Assembly (NCBI GenBank): GCA_024626585.2
Contig: JANKJI020000004.1
Location: forward strand, 63,393,472-63,417,751
From: Ginkgo biloba
Taxonomy: Eukaryota; Plantae; Ginkgophyta
Direction of reading: 5' to 3'
DNA length: 24,280 bases
Made by a program: the position numbers and the translations under genes. Positions 12,156 to 20,943 of this stretch are shown here, one piece after another (the first letter of the stretch is position 1; the number at the start of each line of letters is the position of its first letter). A model generated the notes under the pieces. It was not told the origin of the DNA and ran no database searches. It saw only the letters and a list, made by a program, of their open reading frames with translations.

Positions 12156-13130
12156 CCCATTAAAAACTTATATTATTCATGAGAAGATGAAGAAACCCTT
12201 TAAATTTGAGTATATAACCTTGAATAAATATTCTCCTATGTTAACTCTTCCTTGAAATCTTTGAATTTCCTTAACTGCATGAGGTGGTAATAATTTCATG
12301 ATTTATTTTATTTTGTTAATATATATAGAAATATCATTCTTGGATATAATGTATTGCAAGAAACAACTAGAAACAACATAAAATATGTTATTCGAAGGAT
12401 TAAGCCTAATCTTGAACTTTCAACATCTATAAAAAATCTACATTAAATTCATTATGTGGCCCTCACATTTTCTATATTTTGTCAATATGTAATCTAGGAA
12501 AGTAATTATAACCTTTGACATTAGCTCATGAAAGGCATAGTTCATTTCTCTTTGAAAGGTAGCACTGACATTCCTAAGGCTAAAACATATAACTTTATAG
12601 AAAAATATTACCTAAGGTATAGTAAAATCCATCTTAGGTCTATCAACTTTAAAAATAAGGATTTTTTTTATATCCTAAAAATTCATCTATGAGTGAAAGA
12701 ACTTCATAAATAGTTGTTCTATCAATGAGATCATCCATAAATGGAGTATGATAGTTATCCTTATGGCATTCCCTCTTTGATTTTTATATTCCATACATAT
12801 GTGTATTGAACCATTCTGATTTTATACTGGGATAATATTGGATACCCATTATATATATTTGATGGGATAAATGAAATAAATATCTAATAATTTCCAAAGT
12901 TTTTATTTAATAACTAATTAGAAGTTATCATTTACTAGTCTCTAATGCTATCATACTAGATTAATATTAGGACATATTAATATATTATCAGTGACTACAT
13001 TAGTATCCATTCCAATCATCTCAAAATATGACCTAATAAATACATCTCTATAATCTTAAAATATTTTTCTAAGTTAATCTTACTCCTTCAATGTGTATTT
13101 AGTACCTTAGGTAATGTACTCTAGTTTTCT
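12156..13130 (-). pseudogene. Reverse transcriptase
   Basis: KDNYHTPFMDDLIDRT..LSLIDEFLGY..SLRNVSATFQREMNYAFH..FLDYIL (decayed YxDD)..KIRLNP..KEIQRFQGRVN. Confidence 0.93.
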
Positions 13131-13134
13131 GGAG

Positions 13135-13169
<35 letters not shown>

Positions 13170-13863
13170 AGGGATTATATTCATCAAATTTTACTCTTAA
13201 AATACATTAATAACATTTGGTGTGAGAGATAAGAAATCTNNNNNNNNNNNNNNNNNNNNNNNNNNNNNNNNNNNNNNNNNNNNNNNNNNNNNNNNNNNNN
13301 NNNNNNNNNNNNNNNNNNNNNNNNNNNNNNNNNNNNNNNTTCATAAACAGTTGTTCTATCAATGATATCATCCATAAATGGAGTAGGATAGTTATCCTTA
13401 TGGCATTCCCTCTTTAATTTTGATAGTCCATATATATGTTTATTGAACCATTCTTATTTTAGACTGGGATAAGATAGCCATTATATATATTTGATGGGAT
13501 AAATGAAATAAATATATAATAATTTCTAAAGTAAAAATAATAACTACTTAGAAGTTATCTTTTACTAGTCTTTAATGGCATCATACTAGATTAATATTAG
13601 GACATATAAATATATTATTAGTGACCACATTAGTATTCATTCCAAGCATCTCAAAATATGACCCAATAAAGACATCTCTATAATCTTTGAAGATTTTTCT
13701 AAGTTAATCTTCCTCCTTCAATGTGTATTTAGTAACTCAGGTAATATACTCTAGTTTTCTAGAGTAAGAGATATATATTTNNNNNNNNNNNNNNNNNNNN
13801 NNNNNNNNNNNNNNNNNNNNNNNNNNNNNNNNNNNNNCATTTGGTGTGAGAGAAAATAAATCT
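12703..13863. repeat. Direct duplication of ~540 bp (12703-13239 vs 13340-13863) of the RT N-terminal part, separated by a 100-N gap
   Basis: The copies align end to end, about 90% identical by eye; both start TTCATAAA.AGTTGTTCTATCAATG and end CATTTGGTGTGAGAGA..AAATCT. Confidence 0.95.
13137..13166. repeat. (AT)15 microsatellite
   Basis: Read directly. Confidence 0.95.
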
Positions 13864-14503: not shown

Positions 14504-14609
14504 NNNNNNNNNNNNNNNNNNNNNNNNNNNNNNNNNNNNNNNNNNNNNNNNNNNNNNNNNNNNNNNNNNNNNNNNNNNNNNNNNNNNNNNNNNNNNNNNN
14601 NNNTATCTA

Positions 14610-14970
14610 TGGCATATTTTTATGTGTGAATTTTTTTCACGTTAATATCTTTCTCTCTCAATTTAATATAGTGTGTGTGTGAGTAATAATCCCACATTGG
14701 TACCAACCTCGAGAATGGAGTGGTTTATGAATCCCATCACCCACCAAACCCTTTGCCAATGGGGTAACAAGATTAGAGGTGCAATCCATCGATCACACAT
14801 TTGTGGGACTATTCACCCCTATTAACATTAGGTCATAATGTTGTGTGTTGTGTAGTGGCCCTCTTGACTCGGTTGGCTCATTGTGATATAAAAATGTATA
14901 TTGCAAGTCTATTCGTGGCATATTAAAATGTGTGAATTTAATTCACATTAATCTCTCTCTCTCTCTCTCT
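14610..14970. repeat. Unclassified repeat with ~50-bp imperfect direct repeats (14610-14659, 14916-14965), ending in (CT)n
   Basis: TGGCATATT...ATGTGTGAATTT..TTCAC.TTAAT.TCT.TCTCTCTC occurs twice, about 306 bp apart. Confidence 0.65.
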
Positions 14971-15086
14971 ACATTATCCCAGTCCATTTAACTTATATCA
15001 TGAGAATTCCTTCCACATTCCCCTCTTTCACTCCTTTCTCTTGTTTCTTCCTCATACCTTACCCATTTTGGCCAGTGTTCAACTCC

Positions 15087-15779
15087 ATGACCATGAGAAT
15101 TTACTGAAAAATGGTGAGTATGGTGCCTTGAATCTCCAAATGTAGTTGTTCCAAACTTTAACTTACCTGTATATGAGTTCTTTTCCTCTTTTCTTTGCCA
15201 TCCAACAACTATAGTTGGGTCTACTCTTAATACAAGTTGTATATTTCCACTTGATATTTTTGAAAGTTAGCGAGTCTGGGTATTTTCCAAATTGACAGAG
15301 TTGTCTTTTAAAGATATTGATATCCTAACAATTCCTTTTGAATGAAATGATAAGTGCCCAGAAGTTTAAAATCCAAGGAGAGAGCATAATGTTGCACTAG
15401 GAACCACTTCTGTGGAAGAAACTAATAATGTTTAGTGTAACAGCATGGCTGTGGCAACATCACCTCTAGAATCCCTCATTATTACCAAGTTTTCACCAAA
15501 TATGATAGTGTCCTTCTTGGATACATATGACTATACTTTACTAAACATAGCCATCCCTTCCATAATGCCACCACCATTAAACAACTTTTAAAAAGATAAA
15601 TTTGTAAGAAATAACTGAGAATGCTGCACATAGGCTATAAAATTTTCCTCTTTCTCCCACCGTTGTTGCATTCTCTCAAAATCCTTAATTTATTCTATTG
15701 TATTCTGTTTTGGACCCAATTCCAAACTAGACGTTAGGCCTTCCATACTATAGATGTCATAAATTTTCCTCTTGCGCTC
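15087..15779 (-). pseudogene. ATJ13: Processed DnaJ13/OWL1 (DNAJC11-like) fragment, N-proximal segment (end of J-domain to SHG), placed second
   Basis: 231 codons in one frame with 6 stops: ERKRKIYDIYSMEGLTSSLELGPK..GGGIMEGMAMFSKV*S..SLKDNSVNLENTQTR*LS..SGNIQLVL..VGWQRKEEK..GKLKFGTTTFG..HTHHFSVNSHG. This matches recalled plant dnaJ13 ([43 protein letters not shown]). No intron. Confidence 0.92.
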
Positions 15780-16110
15780 AAGGATATGATCCAAAGTCAT
15801 TTTTTACTTCTCTAGATTTTTTTCTTTTCCCCTTTTTATGTCAGTAAGGTTTAATTACACAAACCTTTAGAAAATCATAGAGTGATGATGGAATAATTAA
15901 TTTCCCAATAGCAATAAATGGGTTCAAGGCTCTTGAGAGTAATACAAGAATACTAAATTTCTGATCGCCACGATGGAGTTCAAATCTCAAAAAAAAATTA
16001 TGAATTCCTAGAGTGTGGAGAATTCACATAGTAGTGTAGTTTGATATTATTTTTCCACCTTTGAATTCAAATTCAAGGGAAATAATCCCAATTCTACCTC
16101 CAATTTGACC
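15780..16110 (-). pseudogene. ATJ13: Processed DnaJ13/OWL1 fragment, C-proximal segment, placed first
   Basis: GQIGGRIGIISLEFEFKGGKIISNYTTM*ILHTLGIHNFFLRFELHRGDQKFSILVLLSRALNP..IIPSSLY..IKPY..LEK*KMTLDHIL matches GRIAGRVG..LEIEVGGGRKIS..KFELHRGGQK..LLSRHLNP..IPTSLY..VKPY. There is one +1 slip in an A-run near 15835. Confidence 0.9.
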
Positions 16111-16304
16111 AGCTAACGTCAAGTTACAATTAAGACCTTTGTCGAGAAACATTGAATAAGCTTTCACAAATGTAGTAAAATATGTAATGGAATGCTCCAC
16201 AACAACCATTGACTCAATGAATCCATCTCCACACTCGAAGCACACCATTTTCTTGTAAGTGATGAAGAGATGTTAATAAGTAAAGAGGCACATCAGGAAA
16301 GTCT

Positions 16305-16316
16305 GCTTTGATACTA
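16305..16316 (-). promoter_or_regulatory. Primer-binding site, tRNA-iMet (unit 3)
   Basis: TAGTATCAAAGC vs consensus TGGTATCAGAGC (two G->A changes), abutting the LTR. Confidence 0.85.
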
Positions 16317-16547
16317 TATTGAAATAGGTACTCAAATTGCATTACATGCAAATTTGTACCAAGAACATGTGTAATTCAAAACTGTTCATCATTACAATAT
16401 TAGTGTCATCTATTTATACACTATGGGGATTAATTGCTTTATAAATACTAACATTTATAATTACTTCATGTGATCACATGATGGCTAATGTTATTTTTCT
16501 AACATGTGATGACTAATATGTGACCATTAACAACATTATTTCTAACA
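16317..16547 (-). repeat. Short LTR type A (231 bp), internal and shared between units 2 and 3
   Basis: TGTTAGAAAT...ATTTCAATA termini, an internal TATAAATA, a PPT on one side and a PBS on the other; homologous to 20146-20328. Confidence 0.9.
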
Positions 16548-16558
16548 CCCTCCCTTAA
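16548..16558 (-). promoter_or_regulatory. Polypurine tract (TTAAGGGAGGG), copia-style
   Basis: Immediately precedes the TG of LTR A. Confidence 0.88.
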
Positions 16559-16649
16559 TGTTGGTTGGGGGTCACATGAAAAATGAGGTGTTGGTATTGA
16601 CTCTACAAGACTTTATTTCTTCCCATTATGATCTCATTATCTTTCATAT

Positions 16650-16856
16650 TTGAAATTTCCAACTTGTGGTCCTTCCAATCTGGTTCTTCTTTTTGGTTTA
16701 GATTTGAAGCCTCCAACTCATAGTCCCTCCAATATGGTTTTATTTTCTCTTTCAGATTTGAAGCCTCCAACTCGTTGTCCCTTCAATTTGCTTCTACTTT
16801 CTCTTCTTTTCTCAATAAAATTCTATTTTTGGAAGTCTCCAACCCATGGTCTCTTC
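16650..16856. repeat. 54-bp tandem repeat x3 plus a degenerate fourth copy, just upstream of the PPT
   Basis: Units start TTGAA..TCCAACT at 16650, 16704 and 16758, with a related motif near 16830. This explains the 18-aa periodicity of ORF 16650-16943. Confidence 0.88.
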
Positions 16857-17227
16857 TTTAGCAATTATCCTCTCCTCAGAGCATCCAAATCATGGTCCCT
16901 ACAAGGTTTTTCCCTTCCTAAAACATTGCATAGTTTTATCTAAAATAATCTTTTATCCATCAATAAATTGAATTTAATTATAATCAATTCCTCATTTTCC
17001 TCTCCATATCCATCACTGTCTTCCTTAATAAGTTTTTTCTATTACTCAATGTTGTGATCTCTCATTATCCAATTTACTATCCTCCTTAGTTGAATAACAT
17101 TCTCATAGAAAATATATTGAATCTAAACTACATTATATACATGTATAACTTTTCATACTAATATGGGACTAAATCAAACATCTATAGAATAATTTTAAAT
17201 ATGAAATGTAATTATAATTTCTCCCTA

Positions 17228-17601
17228 TGACAATAGTATTTGATGAAAGAGTATCAAGACCTTGATGATATTTCCATTTTTGGACATACCCTCCAATCAT
17301 TATACTCCATGATATAATATTTCACTCGGGTATTTTTTCAAACAGATGGTATGGAACCCATATTTCACATTCTTGACTATATAAAAGAATATGATTTGTG
17401 TCTAGTCTTGATTATGTAACCATGGATCCTCTTGCTGTGTTACAAATTTGTTGAATGGATAAATGCTAGGAGTACACTCATTATAGTTACATAGTTGGAA
17501 ATCATGCCAGCAAGTTACATTCAATGAAAGAGAATCAATACCTCAACCTAAAAATCATTCTAGTCTATGATATTTCTTAAAGATATTTTGTCAAGTAATT
17601 A
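17228..17601 (-). pseudogene. PLS-class pentatricopeptide repeat (PPR) gene fragment
   Basis: LLDKISLRNIID*N; EVLILFH*M*LAGMISNYVTIMSVL..L*HSKRIHGYIIK; HLFEK; NIISWSIMIGGYVQ/NGNIIKVLILFHQ. Confidence 0.88.
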
Positions 17602-17604
17602 TAG

Positions 17605-18700
17605 TTGATAGTATAAATATGATTGGCCTTTCCACTTGATAGAAAACTCGATTTCATTCCAATCTATCTCATCATCTGATGAGGTACTTAATACAGGTGG
17701 CCCAGGTTGTTTATCATCTGCAAGTGCATTTTGATCAATTCCCTTAGGTTGATGCCATATTACTCTCTCAATTATATCAACATCATATTCATTAAACTCT
17801 TCTATGGAAATTTTAACTTGTTTATTGGCCTGTTCTTCCTCTTCATCTTCACTCTATTCACTTTTAACATACAAAATTTTATGAATCGATCTACTTGACT
17901 TTTGTAACTCTATTGAATGTACATCCTTATTCCTCAACATGGGATGTTAACCCTATCCCTTCCTATGAAGTGATAAGACCTTCCTTGATGAATGATTAAA
18001 ATATTTATCACTATCTTCATTTGTATCTTACGTAGAATATTTCTCATTCTCTAATATTATCCTTCCCCTTTTGGGGTGCATAGATCTAGTTAAACCTTTT
18101 TCTTCTCTAGCTGACTATGAAGCTCTTATAACTCTGTGGTTACCTCGATAGACAAGTCCTATATACTCTTAATCACCTTCATCCCCATCCTCCTCCTCCA
18201 TATATTCTTCACTAGCATACTGTTCATCCTTGCATGTTTGACGATGACTTCAATTGGCACTATAAAAAATAGGATTGAAATCAACATCATCCAAGCCATC
18301 CTCATATTCATCATCCTATTCATCCTCTTTATGGTAATCATCATCAACAACTTCTAATTTTATAGATTTTGACCTCTTTGGAACATTTTTTTTTTCACCA
18401 ACAACCCTTATTGAAATCCTAGAATTTAAGCCTCTCACCCTATTAGCCTCTCTACCCAATAATGATTCACTCCTGTCTTATCCACCCTACTCATACTAAT
18501 CATCAAATAACATATCTTCCATAGGGAACTCTATTTGGTCTCTCTAGTTTTCTCCAGCATCCTTATGCTCATAGTAGTCCTCTACTTCTAACTAGTTTTC
18601 TCCATCGTGAGTTATATTATCTCCACAACCTTCTTCACCTTGGTAATTAGAATCTATTTTTTTTAAATCTTTCCCAAATTTAGAACTTTTCTCTTATTTA
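17605..18700 (-). pseudogene. CHR5: Processed CHR5 (CHD1-type remodeller) fragment: acidic N-terminus to first chromodomain; may extend to ~18870
   Basis: FPMEDMLFDD*YE*GG*DRSESL (cf. VPADEMLSDEYYEQDGEEQSDSL), EDGLDDVDFNP, SSRSIHKILYVKSE*SED, DIIERVIWHQPKG, DWNEIEFSIKWKGQSYLYYQ (cf. SIEKVLWHQPKG..DWNEMEFLIKWKGQSHLHCQ). No intron is evident over ~1.1 kb. Confidence 0.92.
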
Positions 18701-19058
18701 GCATAATTTTAGTTAAATGGAGAGTGTGTGCCAACATAGATTCCAACACCTTTTTCACCACCTATCTTTTAGCACCCACATTAGCATTCATGTGCATTCA
18801 CCATTTTGCATGTGAATGAAGATTATTATGATAAACTCTCTGCCTTGAAATTGGTCAAATTTCACCTCTTCCTTAGAATTACAACAATAAAAATATCCTC
18901 CAAAGAAATTATTTGATAGAGTTACTCCTTATAAACTAACAATTATATTTTTTATAAGAAGTAATAAAAGTTATATTTTTACATAGCGAGTGATGAATAG
19001 ACACCAAGCAGATACTGAGTAGAAAAGAGACACAATAGGAGGCATAACAAGAAAGCTT

Positions 19059-19070
19059 GCTCTAATACCG
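19059..19070 (-). promoter_or_regulatory. Primer-binding site, tRNA-iMet (unit 2)
   Basis: CGGTATTAGAGC vs TGGTATCAGAGC. Confidence 0.8.
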
Positions 19071-19347
19071 TATAAGAAATTAAGAGATATCATTTATCTC
19101 ATATCTTTTGCATGAGTTATAGCTCTGAAATAATATTCACAACATGAAGAAGACAAAAATATAACACACAAAATAATATTGATATTCTAATATCTTTTAC
19201 AATGTGAATAGCCTCTATATATACTCTATAGAGACTAACTAACTTGCAAGTAACTCAACTACTAATATGTATAATATCTTATTTGATCATGTGACAACTA
19301 ATACGACATCCAATATATGACTTAATATGATGACTAGTGTGTGAACA
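19071..19347 (-). repeat. LTR type B (distinct from type A, truncated by the gap)
   Basis: Abuts the PBS, contains a TATA-like GAGTATATATAGAGGC, and shows only patchy similarity to LTR A (CATGTGA..ACTAATA, TGATGACTA.TGTGTGA). Confidence 0.65.
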
Positions 19348-19884: not shown

Positions 19885-20134
19885 GGTTCTTGATTATCCG
19901 ACGCATTGCTACGCAACCACTAGACTTACCACATAGTAATCGTCGGTTGAGGCAATGACAAGAGGTCCTATTTCGATTGCATGGGTATTTCATATGTGCC
20001 CTCTAACACCAATTTTGATTCCTGGCAGAGAAGCCACACACAAGGGAAACTACGTCTAGAATTTTTCTAGTCTTCCCACACTCAAGGAGCATCATTTCCT
20101 TGTTAGTGATGAAAAGACGCAAAGGCATTATTTT

Positions 20135-20145
20135 ATCTCATACCA
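20135..20145 (-). promoter_or_regulatory. Degenerate PBS, tRNA-iMet (unit 1)
   Basis: TGGTATGAGAT directly after LTR A'. Confidence 0.7.
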
Positions 20146-20328
20146 TATTGACATAGGTACTCAGCTTGCATTACATGCGAATCGTACCAATAACATGTTC
20201 AATCTTAGAATTGTTCATTATTAAATATGAGTGTCTTCCATTTATACACTATGGACATTAACTACTAACATATATAATAACTCCATGTAATGATTAATAT
20301 GTGACCACTAACTACATTATTTCGAATA
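20146..20328 (-). repeat. Short LTR type A' (183 bp), 5'-most LTR of the array
   Basis: Aligns with 16317-16547: ATAGGTACTCA..TTGCATTACATGC..GTACCAA.AACATGT..ATTTATACACTATGG..TAATATGTGACCA.TAAC.ACATTATTTC. Confidence 0.88.
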
Positions 20329-20943
20329 GCATTTCCATATAAAAGAAACACTCTATCCGTATGTTTATTATTAGAGTATAAATACTAAATAAACACCATG
20401 AAAAATTTATGCAGTAGTGATCTAATGTATAATTGTTGTTCATTTTAGGGCTTAAAATACATTGGAAACCATAAAGTTAAGCACCTCCAATGTGGAGAAT
20501 CAAAGAATTAGAACTTTGAATTGGGATGTTTTAGTTCCCATAAAATATGGGATAAATCATTTACACCTATCATATGATAATATTGACATATTTACTACAT
20601 GCAATCATCCATAAAGTGTGTTAAATAAGACTACATCAACACAGGTCTATGTGCAATATAAGATATGTATAGTACTATGCATAACATATATATTCAATAG
20701 ATTGTACATCATATGCTACAAATAATCTAGAGACAGTGCTACACATGTAAAATATGTTGAATTACCATCATATATATTGATTAACCGAATACAATTTTAA
20801 ATGTCTTCGAGTGTTATTTTCCATTTATAGTGTATGAGTTTAAGATAACTATATATAACCTAATGTTATGGAATTAATACTTCATGGATATTTTTTTTCT
20901 TGAAAGCAAGGGCGGGAGTGTTTATATACATATTTTTTTAAGG

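Follow-up and report, generated by a model that had tools for sequence, protein, structure and literature searches.

How did a copy of one spliced host transcript come to lie in a plant chromosome with its later part read before its earlier part, beginning and ending at the same few bases? The question is raised by positions 15087-16110 of a 24,280 nt stretch of Ginkgo biloba DNA, hereafter the window, in which a decayed coding sequence (CDS) of DnaJ13 (DNAJC11-type) is found on the minus strand, within a gap-free block extending from 14604 to 19347. A preliminary description of this locus had read it as an intron-free, circularly permuted retrocopy, and had proposed that a circular RNA, or a cDNA circularised through microhomology, was copied once round by a template-switching reverse transcriptase (RT) and captured by a long terminal repeat (LTR) element.

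A natural gymnosperm DnaJ13 transcript contig (L004, CDS 237-1880) served as the reference for the colinear comparison, in preference to any joined model of the genomic loci used below (L001-L003). Against it, BLASTN produced exactly two HSPs: window positions 16111 to 15777 (part B) correspond to mRNA positions 1130-1463, at 74.9% identity (E 1.6e-60), and positions 15780 to 15089 (part A) correspond to 443-1134, at 74.8% identity (E 3.4e-132). The later part of the CDS is therefore read first, and the alignment to this relative's transcript consists of the two clean diagonals in reversed order, with abutting ends, that the preliminary description had anticipated. Part B (15777-16110, minus strand) comprises the end of exon 6, exons 7 to 10 and the first 9 nt of exon 11; part A (15088-15780, minus strand), which is read second, extends from approximately nt 60 of exon 2 to approximately nt 65 of exon 6 (mRNA positions 443-1135). 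At the inner join between them, where the minus strand reads ..ATCCTTGAG|CGCAAG.. at 15780/15779, the HSPs overlap by the 4 nt TGAG (15777-15780, minus strand), the same (T)GAG over which the junction had been said to form.

The outer ends behave in a similar manner. Part B opens with GGTCA (16106-16110, minus strand; identified from the sequence and from BLASTN), and the T adjoining it at 16111 also agrees with the L004 transcript; part A closes with ATGGTCA (15088-15094, minus strand), which contains the second GGTCA at 15092-15088. Since part A ends at mRNA position 1135 and part B starts at 1130 or 1131, these ends have the 5-6 nt (T)GGTCA in common, a terminal redundancy. The GGTCA reported at both ends of the copy is thus present, and so is the reported absence of any loss of CDS, with the opening at SHG|(Q/R)IG where SHG|R had been given. 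The 'circle' has a circumference of 1,017 nt, and the copy amounts to one turn plus the redundancy, with no sequence missing. Only positions 207-1227 of the 1,644 nt CDS are present, without introns, as in a copy of part of a spliced mRNA. Two independent breakpoints in a 1.6 kb CDS would fall within 6 nt of one another with a chance of around 0.8%, and the equal divergence of the two parts (74.8% and 74.9% identity) fits a single source and a single event or age. No DnaJ13 homology was found elsewhere in the window; a weak nucleotide match to exon 11 beyond part A (15074-14915) was rejected as chance, there being neither a protein-level match outside 15087-16110 nor an L004 HSP. The copy is dead, with six stop codons in part A, and stops and a 1 nt insertion in part B. 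A Pfam scan of its stop-free pieces gave nothing useful, because these are too short and too decayed.

DnaJ13 proteins were recovered by phmmer using a stop-free 60-residue piece of the copy. TBLASTN of these proteins against the window placed gymnosperm DnaJ13 proteins first, a ranking that by itself points to a gymnosperm rather than an angiosperm as the most likely host. They reach 60-62% amino acid identity, including those of the Logan transcript cluster P0171 (61.5%), Cryptomeria (61.6%) and Juniperus (59.7%); identities to angiosperm proteins are 54-56% for Amborella, Magnolia and Persea and 54% for Camellia. Exact look-ups of P0127, P0143, P0172 and a 74-residue open reading frame of the window returned no record. 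Exon maps were obtained by walking the annotated protein along the loci of Camellia (L001), Magnolia (L002) and Persea (L003), in all of which exons 2 to 10 have the same sizes: 287, 198, 115, 87, 89, 85, 54, 81 and 78 nt. When aligned exon by exon with these three genomic loci, exons 2 to 6 lie head to tail in 15780-15091, and exons 7 to 10 in 16077-15795, without intron sequence; hence exons 2-6 and 6-11 are each contiguous in the copy, as expected of the intron-free retrocopy that had been proposed. Two Logan contigs of 4.8 and 3.7 kb (runs X1 and X2) match the window at 15555-15780 only, with 31 substitutions and 6 gap letters. This interval is exactly the exon 2 part of the copy, and these contigs most likely represent the species' own intron-bearing DnaJ13 gene, by which the exon 2/3 boundary is confirmed in Ginkgo itself.

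Sequence reads place the arrangement in the genome. Over 15230-16524, Logan contigs of 1,295 nt from two studies (X1 and X2) show 0 and 2 differences from the window; the inner join is therefore contained in them, as are the start of part B and the primer binding site (PBS) and LTR that lie upstream of it; a further contig of 516 nt covers 14742-15257 with 0 differences. The permuted arrangement is not an assembly artefact, and the contiguity at 15780 for which the preliminary description had sought confirmation is provided by the read contigs of both studies. By depth the copy is single, with only one contig in each of the bins 15304-15443 and 16004-16073. In one RNA run (X24), of which 6% was read, depth was 0 over 15724-15863 and likewise in the remaining unique bins, giving no indication that the copy is transcribed in that sample; the run is a poly(A) library, a type that does not capture circles. 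RNA reads mapping to 15304-15583 differ from the window by at least 17 letters per read, and their variants are common to an intron-free DNA contig over 15490-15722; such reads come from the parental mRNA or from a second processed copy. The contigs concerned derive from DNA runs (X6 record 20, and one in X1); over 15490-15722 they are approximately 82% identical to the window, contain no intron at the exon 2/3 boundary, and have five variants in common with the RNA reads. They represent either a second, more parent-like processed copy of DnaJ13 or cDNA within the libraries.

The sequence upstream of the copy, in its own reading direction, has the organisation of the 5' end of an LTR retrotransposon. 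A 228 bp LTR with TG..CA ends (LTR2; 16320-16547, minus strand) was identified through a repeat search and alignment, and is of high copy number, at 30-150 times the single-copy depth. A polypurine tract (PPT), AAGGGAGGG (16548-16556, minus strand), precedes this LTR, and a PBS (16305-16316, minus strand) that matches the consensus of the initiator-Met-tRNA type at 10 of its 12 positions follows it. Behind the PBS lie a leader (16214-16304, minus strand), in which the RNA reads have loose ends at 16214 and 16255, and a filler termed x' (16111-16213, minus strand), which separates the leader from part B, is present in around 1-2 copies by depth and matches no DnaJ13 transcript. Alignment revealed a further unit upstream, with a 183 bp LTR (LTR1; 20149-20331, minus strand; repeat search and alignment) and a PBS-like site matching the consensus at 9 of 12 positions (20134-20145, minus strand). 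The two units have LTR2 in common, forming an LTR-int-LTR-int array in which the middle LTR has the PPT on one side and the PBS on the other; they are alike through LTR, PBS and leader as far as about 16228, and then diverge. The low-copy block 14954-16283 lies directly behind this high-copy LTR.

Short TG..CA LTRs, a PBS and a PPT without gag or pol are typical of terminal-repeat retrotransposons in miniature (TRIMs), and Pfam scans of the internal pieces found no gag, pol or other transposable element protein domain. However, the internal region between LTR1 and LTR2 is approximately 3.6 kb in length, where the miniature internal domain of a TRIM measures a few hundred bp, and a small LARD- or TRIM-like element loaded with host sequence is the more fitting description. 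Neither a third, 3' LTR nor a PPT was found downstream of the mosaic by a repeat search and self-BLASTN, and the copy can therefore be placed inside an LTR element on its 5' side only: the proposal that it was carried within such an element is only half supported, by the 5' LTR, PBS and leader. A 9 nt match to an LTR start near 14975 was considered as a third LTR and lies within chance, and a purine-rich run at 15011-15050, considered as a PPT, is assigned by RNA reads to another expressed gene. On its 3' side the mosaic is bounded by an unrelated high-copy repeat (14604-14953; depth 3,000-25,000 relative to approximately 75 for single-copy sequence), beyond which is an N gap.

Several other repeats and open stretches were observed in these surroundings. 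The repeat on the 3' side, followed as far as 14965, has a depth 40-300 times single copy over 14604-14965, and scans for tRNAs and against Rfam produced no match. A 50 nt direct repeat occurs in it at 14610-14659 and again, 306 nt further on, at 14916-14965, and there is a (GA)n run at 14952-14970; internal joints are numerous in the read contigs that contain it, which would suit a tandem or SINE/MITE-like family. Three tandem 54 bp units (16634-16795) lie immediately upstream of the PPT; they are open on the minus strand as an 18-residue repeat (..LEASNLK..), and forms with one extra unit occur in read contigs. The internal region of the upstream unit contains an 84-residue open stretch (17602-17853, minus strand) ending in ..IEFSIKWKGQSYLYYQL, which we take to resemble the start of a CHD-type chromodomain, and a weak pentatricopeptide repeat (PPR) hint at 17172-17321; both are fragments of host genes. 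Elsewhere in the window, a direct duplication of about 440 bp (12703-13148 and 13340-13778, 90% identical) has its copies some 635 bp apart, with an N gap between them.

Immediately beyond part A, poly(A) RNA reads define a second captured piece. Fragment y (15011-15094), 84 nt in length, is approximately 93% identical to an expressed transcript, with six fixed differences, and is covered at depths of 13.7 and 10.9 by first-mate strand, with loose ends at 15011 and 15094 (run X24). The reads on it continue into unrelated sequence on both sides (14 and 22 reads, agreement 1), the 22 reads of the other gene matching as far as 15094 before they depart from the window; y therefore comes from another expressed gene. 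A 42 nt piece at 16214-16255, within the leader, similarly matches an expressed transcript with a CxxC motif (MVCFECGDGF..; KKMVCFECGDGFIE), a weak hint of a zinc ribbon. Identities are 93-95% for the two pieces, and beyond either end of each the corresponding expressed transcript departs from the window. These transcripts represent the donor genes for the mosaic, which accordingly holds parts of at least two expressed transcripts other than DnaJ13.

The junction of part A with y is informative. As judged from the relative's transcript and the window itself, DnaJ13 reads ..TTCTC-ATGGTCA-AATTGG.., and the gene from which y is derived reads ..GATGAGG-ATGGTCA-TGGAG.., giving a 7 nt microhomology at the fusion; one of at least 7 nt would arise by chance with a probability of around 4e-4. 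Because the y gene itself carries ATGGTCA at this point, this end of the copy, as defined by the RNA reads and a composite of the sequences, can be read as a microhomology switch point. The second GGTCA may consequently be derived from y as well as from DnaJ13, and of the earlier view of this motif as the opening of a circle, its occurrence at both ends survives, with the second occurrence readable as a point of switching. Microsimilarity is therefore found at both the B|A (TGAG) and the A|y (ATGGTCA) fusion points, the chance of at least 4 nt at the former being approximately 0.016. A 5 nt match, TGGAG, following a 3 nt offset beyond ATGGTCA, was noticed post hoc.

The observations to be accounted for are the geometry of the copy, its lack of introns, an inner join that falls within exons on both sides, the microhomologies, an upstream LTR with its PBS and leader, and the recovery of the locus from the reads of two studies. 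With a probability of roughly 0.6, we consider it to be an ancient, dead piece of mosaic cDNA that was made inside a small non-autonomous LTR retrotransposon through template switching by RT. Of the proposals in the preliminary description, template switching is the one that most likely holds, given an intron-free, permuted copy with microhomologies, directly behind an LTR, PBS and leader. LTR-mediated retroposition by template switching is marked by incomplete copies of spliced mRNAs, the joining of more than one parental gene and short microsimilarity at fusion points, with a reported median of 6 bp (PMC5131818), a length that the 4 and 7 nt microhomologies here match. Tandem units with a common LTR are likewise a described product of template switching (PMC1950507).

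Under such a mechanism, RT engaged in minus-strand synthesis would have been copying another cellular RNA, represented by fragment y, when the nascent end paired through ATGGTCA with exon 6 of a spliced DnaJ13 RNA. In a first pass, the DnaJ13 RNA would have been copied back to about nt 60 of exon 2, where a switch at TGAG would have moved synthesis to nt 9 of exon 11 in the same RNA. A second pass would then have proceeded back towards exon 6, with exit after (T)GGTCA at the first landing place, followed by the copying of other RNA and subsequently the leader, PBS and LTR of the element itself. It is conjectured that RNase H had by then removed the template from the first landing site onwards, and that the second pass stopped where the first began for this reason, with synthesis running off and a copy choice being forced. 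Run-off of this kind would explain both why the point of entry is also that of exit without a closed circle, and why only a single turn was made; we infer that the template was a linear RNA. A closed circle would yield the same product, and it is only the position of the join that argues against the back-spliced kind.

DNA end joining would also leave microhomology, and an origin at the DNA level, though unlikely, has to be weighed. In such a scheme, a colinear retrocopy or cDNA was circularised at TGAG or duplicated in tandem, then broken and end-joined to x' and y; alternatively, a circle was opened by a staggered cut and its ends were filled in. The 4 and 7 nt microhomologies also fit microhomology-mediated end joining, and a 5 nt duplication is what a staggered cut and fill-in would produce. 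However, a tandem dimer would need two cuts separated by exactly one unit and 5 nt (chance about 0.8%), and if GGTCA arose by fill-in then ATGGTCA of the y gene at the fusion becomes a further coincidence (around 4e-4). The end of x' adjoining the copy is unlike an LTR terminus, making the involvement of integrase unlikely, and reverse transcription typically yields mosaics of this kind, in which short pieces immediately follow an LTR, PBS and leader. Autointegration, integrase-mediated insertion into a circle, 1-LTR circles and nested insertion with a 5 bp target site duplication were each considered and rejected, as none gives the order LTR-x'-B-A-y with a direct B|A join.

Less probable still is the idea that the template was a covalently closed circle of DnaJ13 RNA, produced by back-splicing at cryptic sites or by some other ligation, with a non-canonical junction, which was packaged in a virus-like particle and copied once round by RT. 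One turn of a circle would give the observed geometry, and non-colinear retrocopies are the signature used to recognise pseudogenes derived from circular RNAs (circRNAs), for which the same study allows that non-colinear joins can have other routes (PMC4897178). The evidence against it comes chiefly from the inner join. The first 9 nt of exon 11 close part B (..CAG|GTCCTTGAG in the transcript), and part A begins approximately 60 nt inside exon 2 (..GATGAG|C..), so that 15779/15780 falls on neither exon boundary and the join is exon-internal on both sides of the conserved exon map, in which the start of exon 2 and the exon 10/11 boundary are those mapped in angiosperm genes. In circRNA-derived pseudogenes entire exons are joined at a back-splice junction (Dong et al. 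2016, PMC4897178), and an exon-internal join lacks this defining feature. An AG precedes the acceptor side, and in the three angiosperm genes the donor side is followed by GC, within GCAAG, resembling a GC-type donor; but in the gymnosperm transcript L004, which is closest to the copy, it is followed by GG, and no placement that TGAG permits gives GT or GC. A cryptic GC-AG back-splice is therefore retained as a minor rival only. The RNA run, as a poly(A) library of which 6% was read, contributed no read over the join. The circRNA template that had been proposed is, on the position and letters of the join, not supported, and the accompanying caution that the junction did not obviously look like a canonical back-splice was well placed, since it is exon-internal with no GT after it. 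Were the template nevertheless a closed RNA circle, this would be a circRNA-derived pseudogene in a seed plant.

That two DnaJ13 fragments or paralogues were captured independently and came to lie side by side by chance, or that the assembly is at fault, is largely refuted and highly improbable: gene-fragment capture is very common in gymnosperm genomes (PMC13477047) and the scaffold contains 19 runs of N, but the stretch lies in the gap-free block, the inner join and the beginning of part B are both covered by contigs of two studies, and the parts show equal divergence and meet to within 6 nt.

Template switching inside the element would have taken place long ago. The copy has diverged from the species' own exon 2 by approximately 16%, and LTR1 and LTR2 are 78-89% identical, hence the whole structure is old; these divergences, uncalibrated, suggest an age of roughly tens of millions of years.

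Capture in itself would be ordinary, gene-fragment capture by retrotransposons being commonplace in giant plant genomes. The unusual part is the exact once-round geometry, with two passes of one transcript beginning and ending within the same few bases. If the reading of the locus as a product of template switching is right, it is a natural footprint of the behaviour of retrotransposon RT and RNase H inside the particle, and retrocopies in swapped order are no proof of circular RNAs unless their joins lie on exon boundaries. Should such copies recur in the genome, a census could separate those derived from circles from those derived from switching, and measure template switching in vivo.

Among known systems, retroviral copy choice, forced and dynamic, provides a parallel to the proposed steps: RT abandons its template where this is broken or has been degraded by RNase H, and resumes on an acceptor at a short homology. 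That model comes from retroviruses in cell culture, whereas here the process is reconstructed from one genomic fossil. The circRNA-derived pseudogenes (PMC4897178) are alike in being intron-free copies with exons in a non-colinear, reversed order, but differ in that many copies have one back-splice join, in contrast to the single copy described here, with a join internal to exons 11 and 2 over a 4 nt microhomology, embedded in a multi-gene mosaic behind an LTR. Complex elements that share LTRs, and TRIMs, offer the same LTR-int-LTR-int organisation with foreign internal sequence (Sabot & Schulman 2007, PMC1950507; reviewed in PMC13317346). The likeness to TRIM-type elements extends to the short LTRs (183-228 bp), the TG..CA ends, the PBS and PPT and the lack of gag and pol; in contrast to classical TRIMs, the internal regions here are longer, consisting of kilobases of host-derived mosaic.

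Chimeras formed by template switching within LTR elements are known in plants from maize Bs1 and from rice retrocopies. Those described from Drosophila and vertebrates also consist of partial spliced mRNAs fused to LTR-retrotransposon sequence, with microsimilarity at the fusions, several parental genes and a non-autonomous product (Tan et al. 2016, PMC5131818). The Ginkgo locus, of which the 5' LTR side alone is visible, differs from these in that one transcript was used twice, in swapped order, with the place of entry being that of exit. No description of a once-round permutation with terminal redundancy was found in the literature searched, and a once-round permuted copy of this type would be a new form of LTR-mediated chimeric retroposition.
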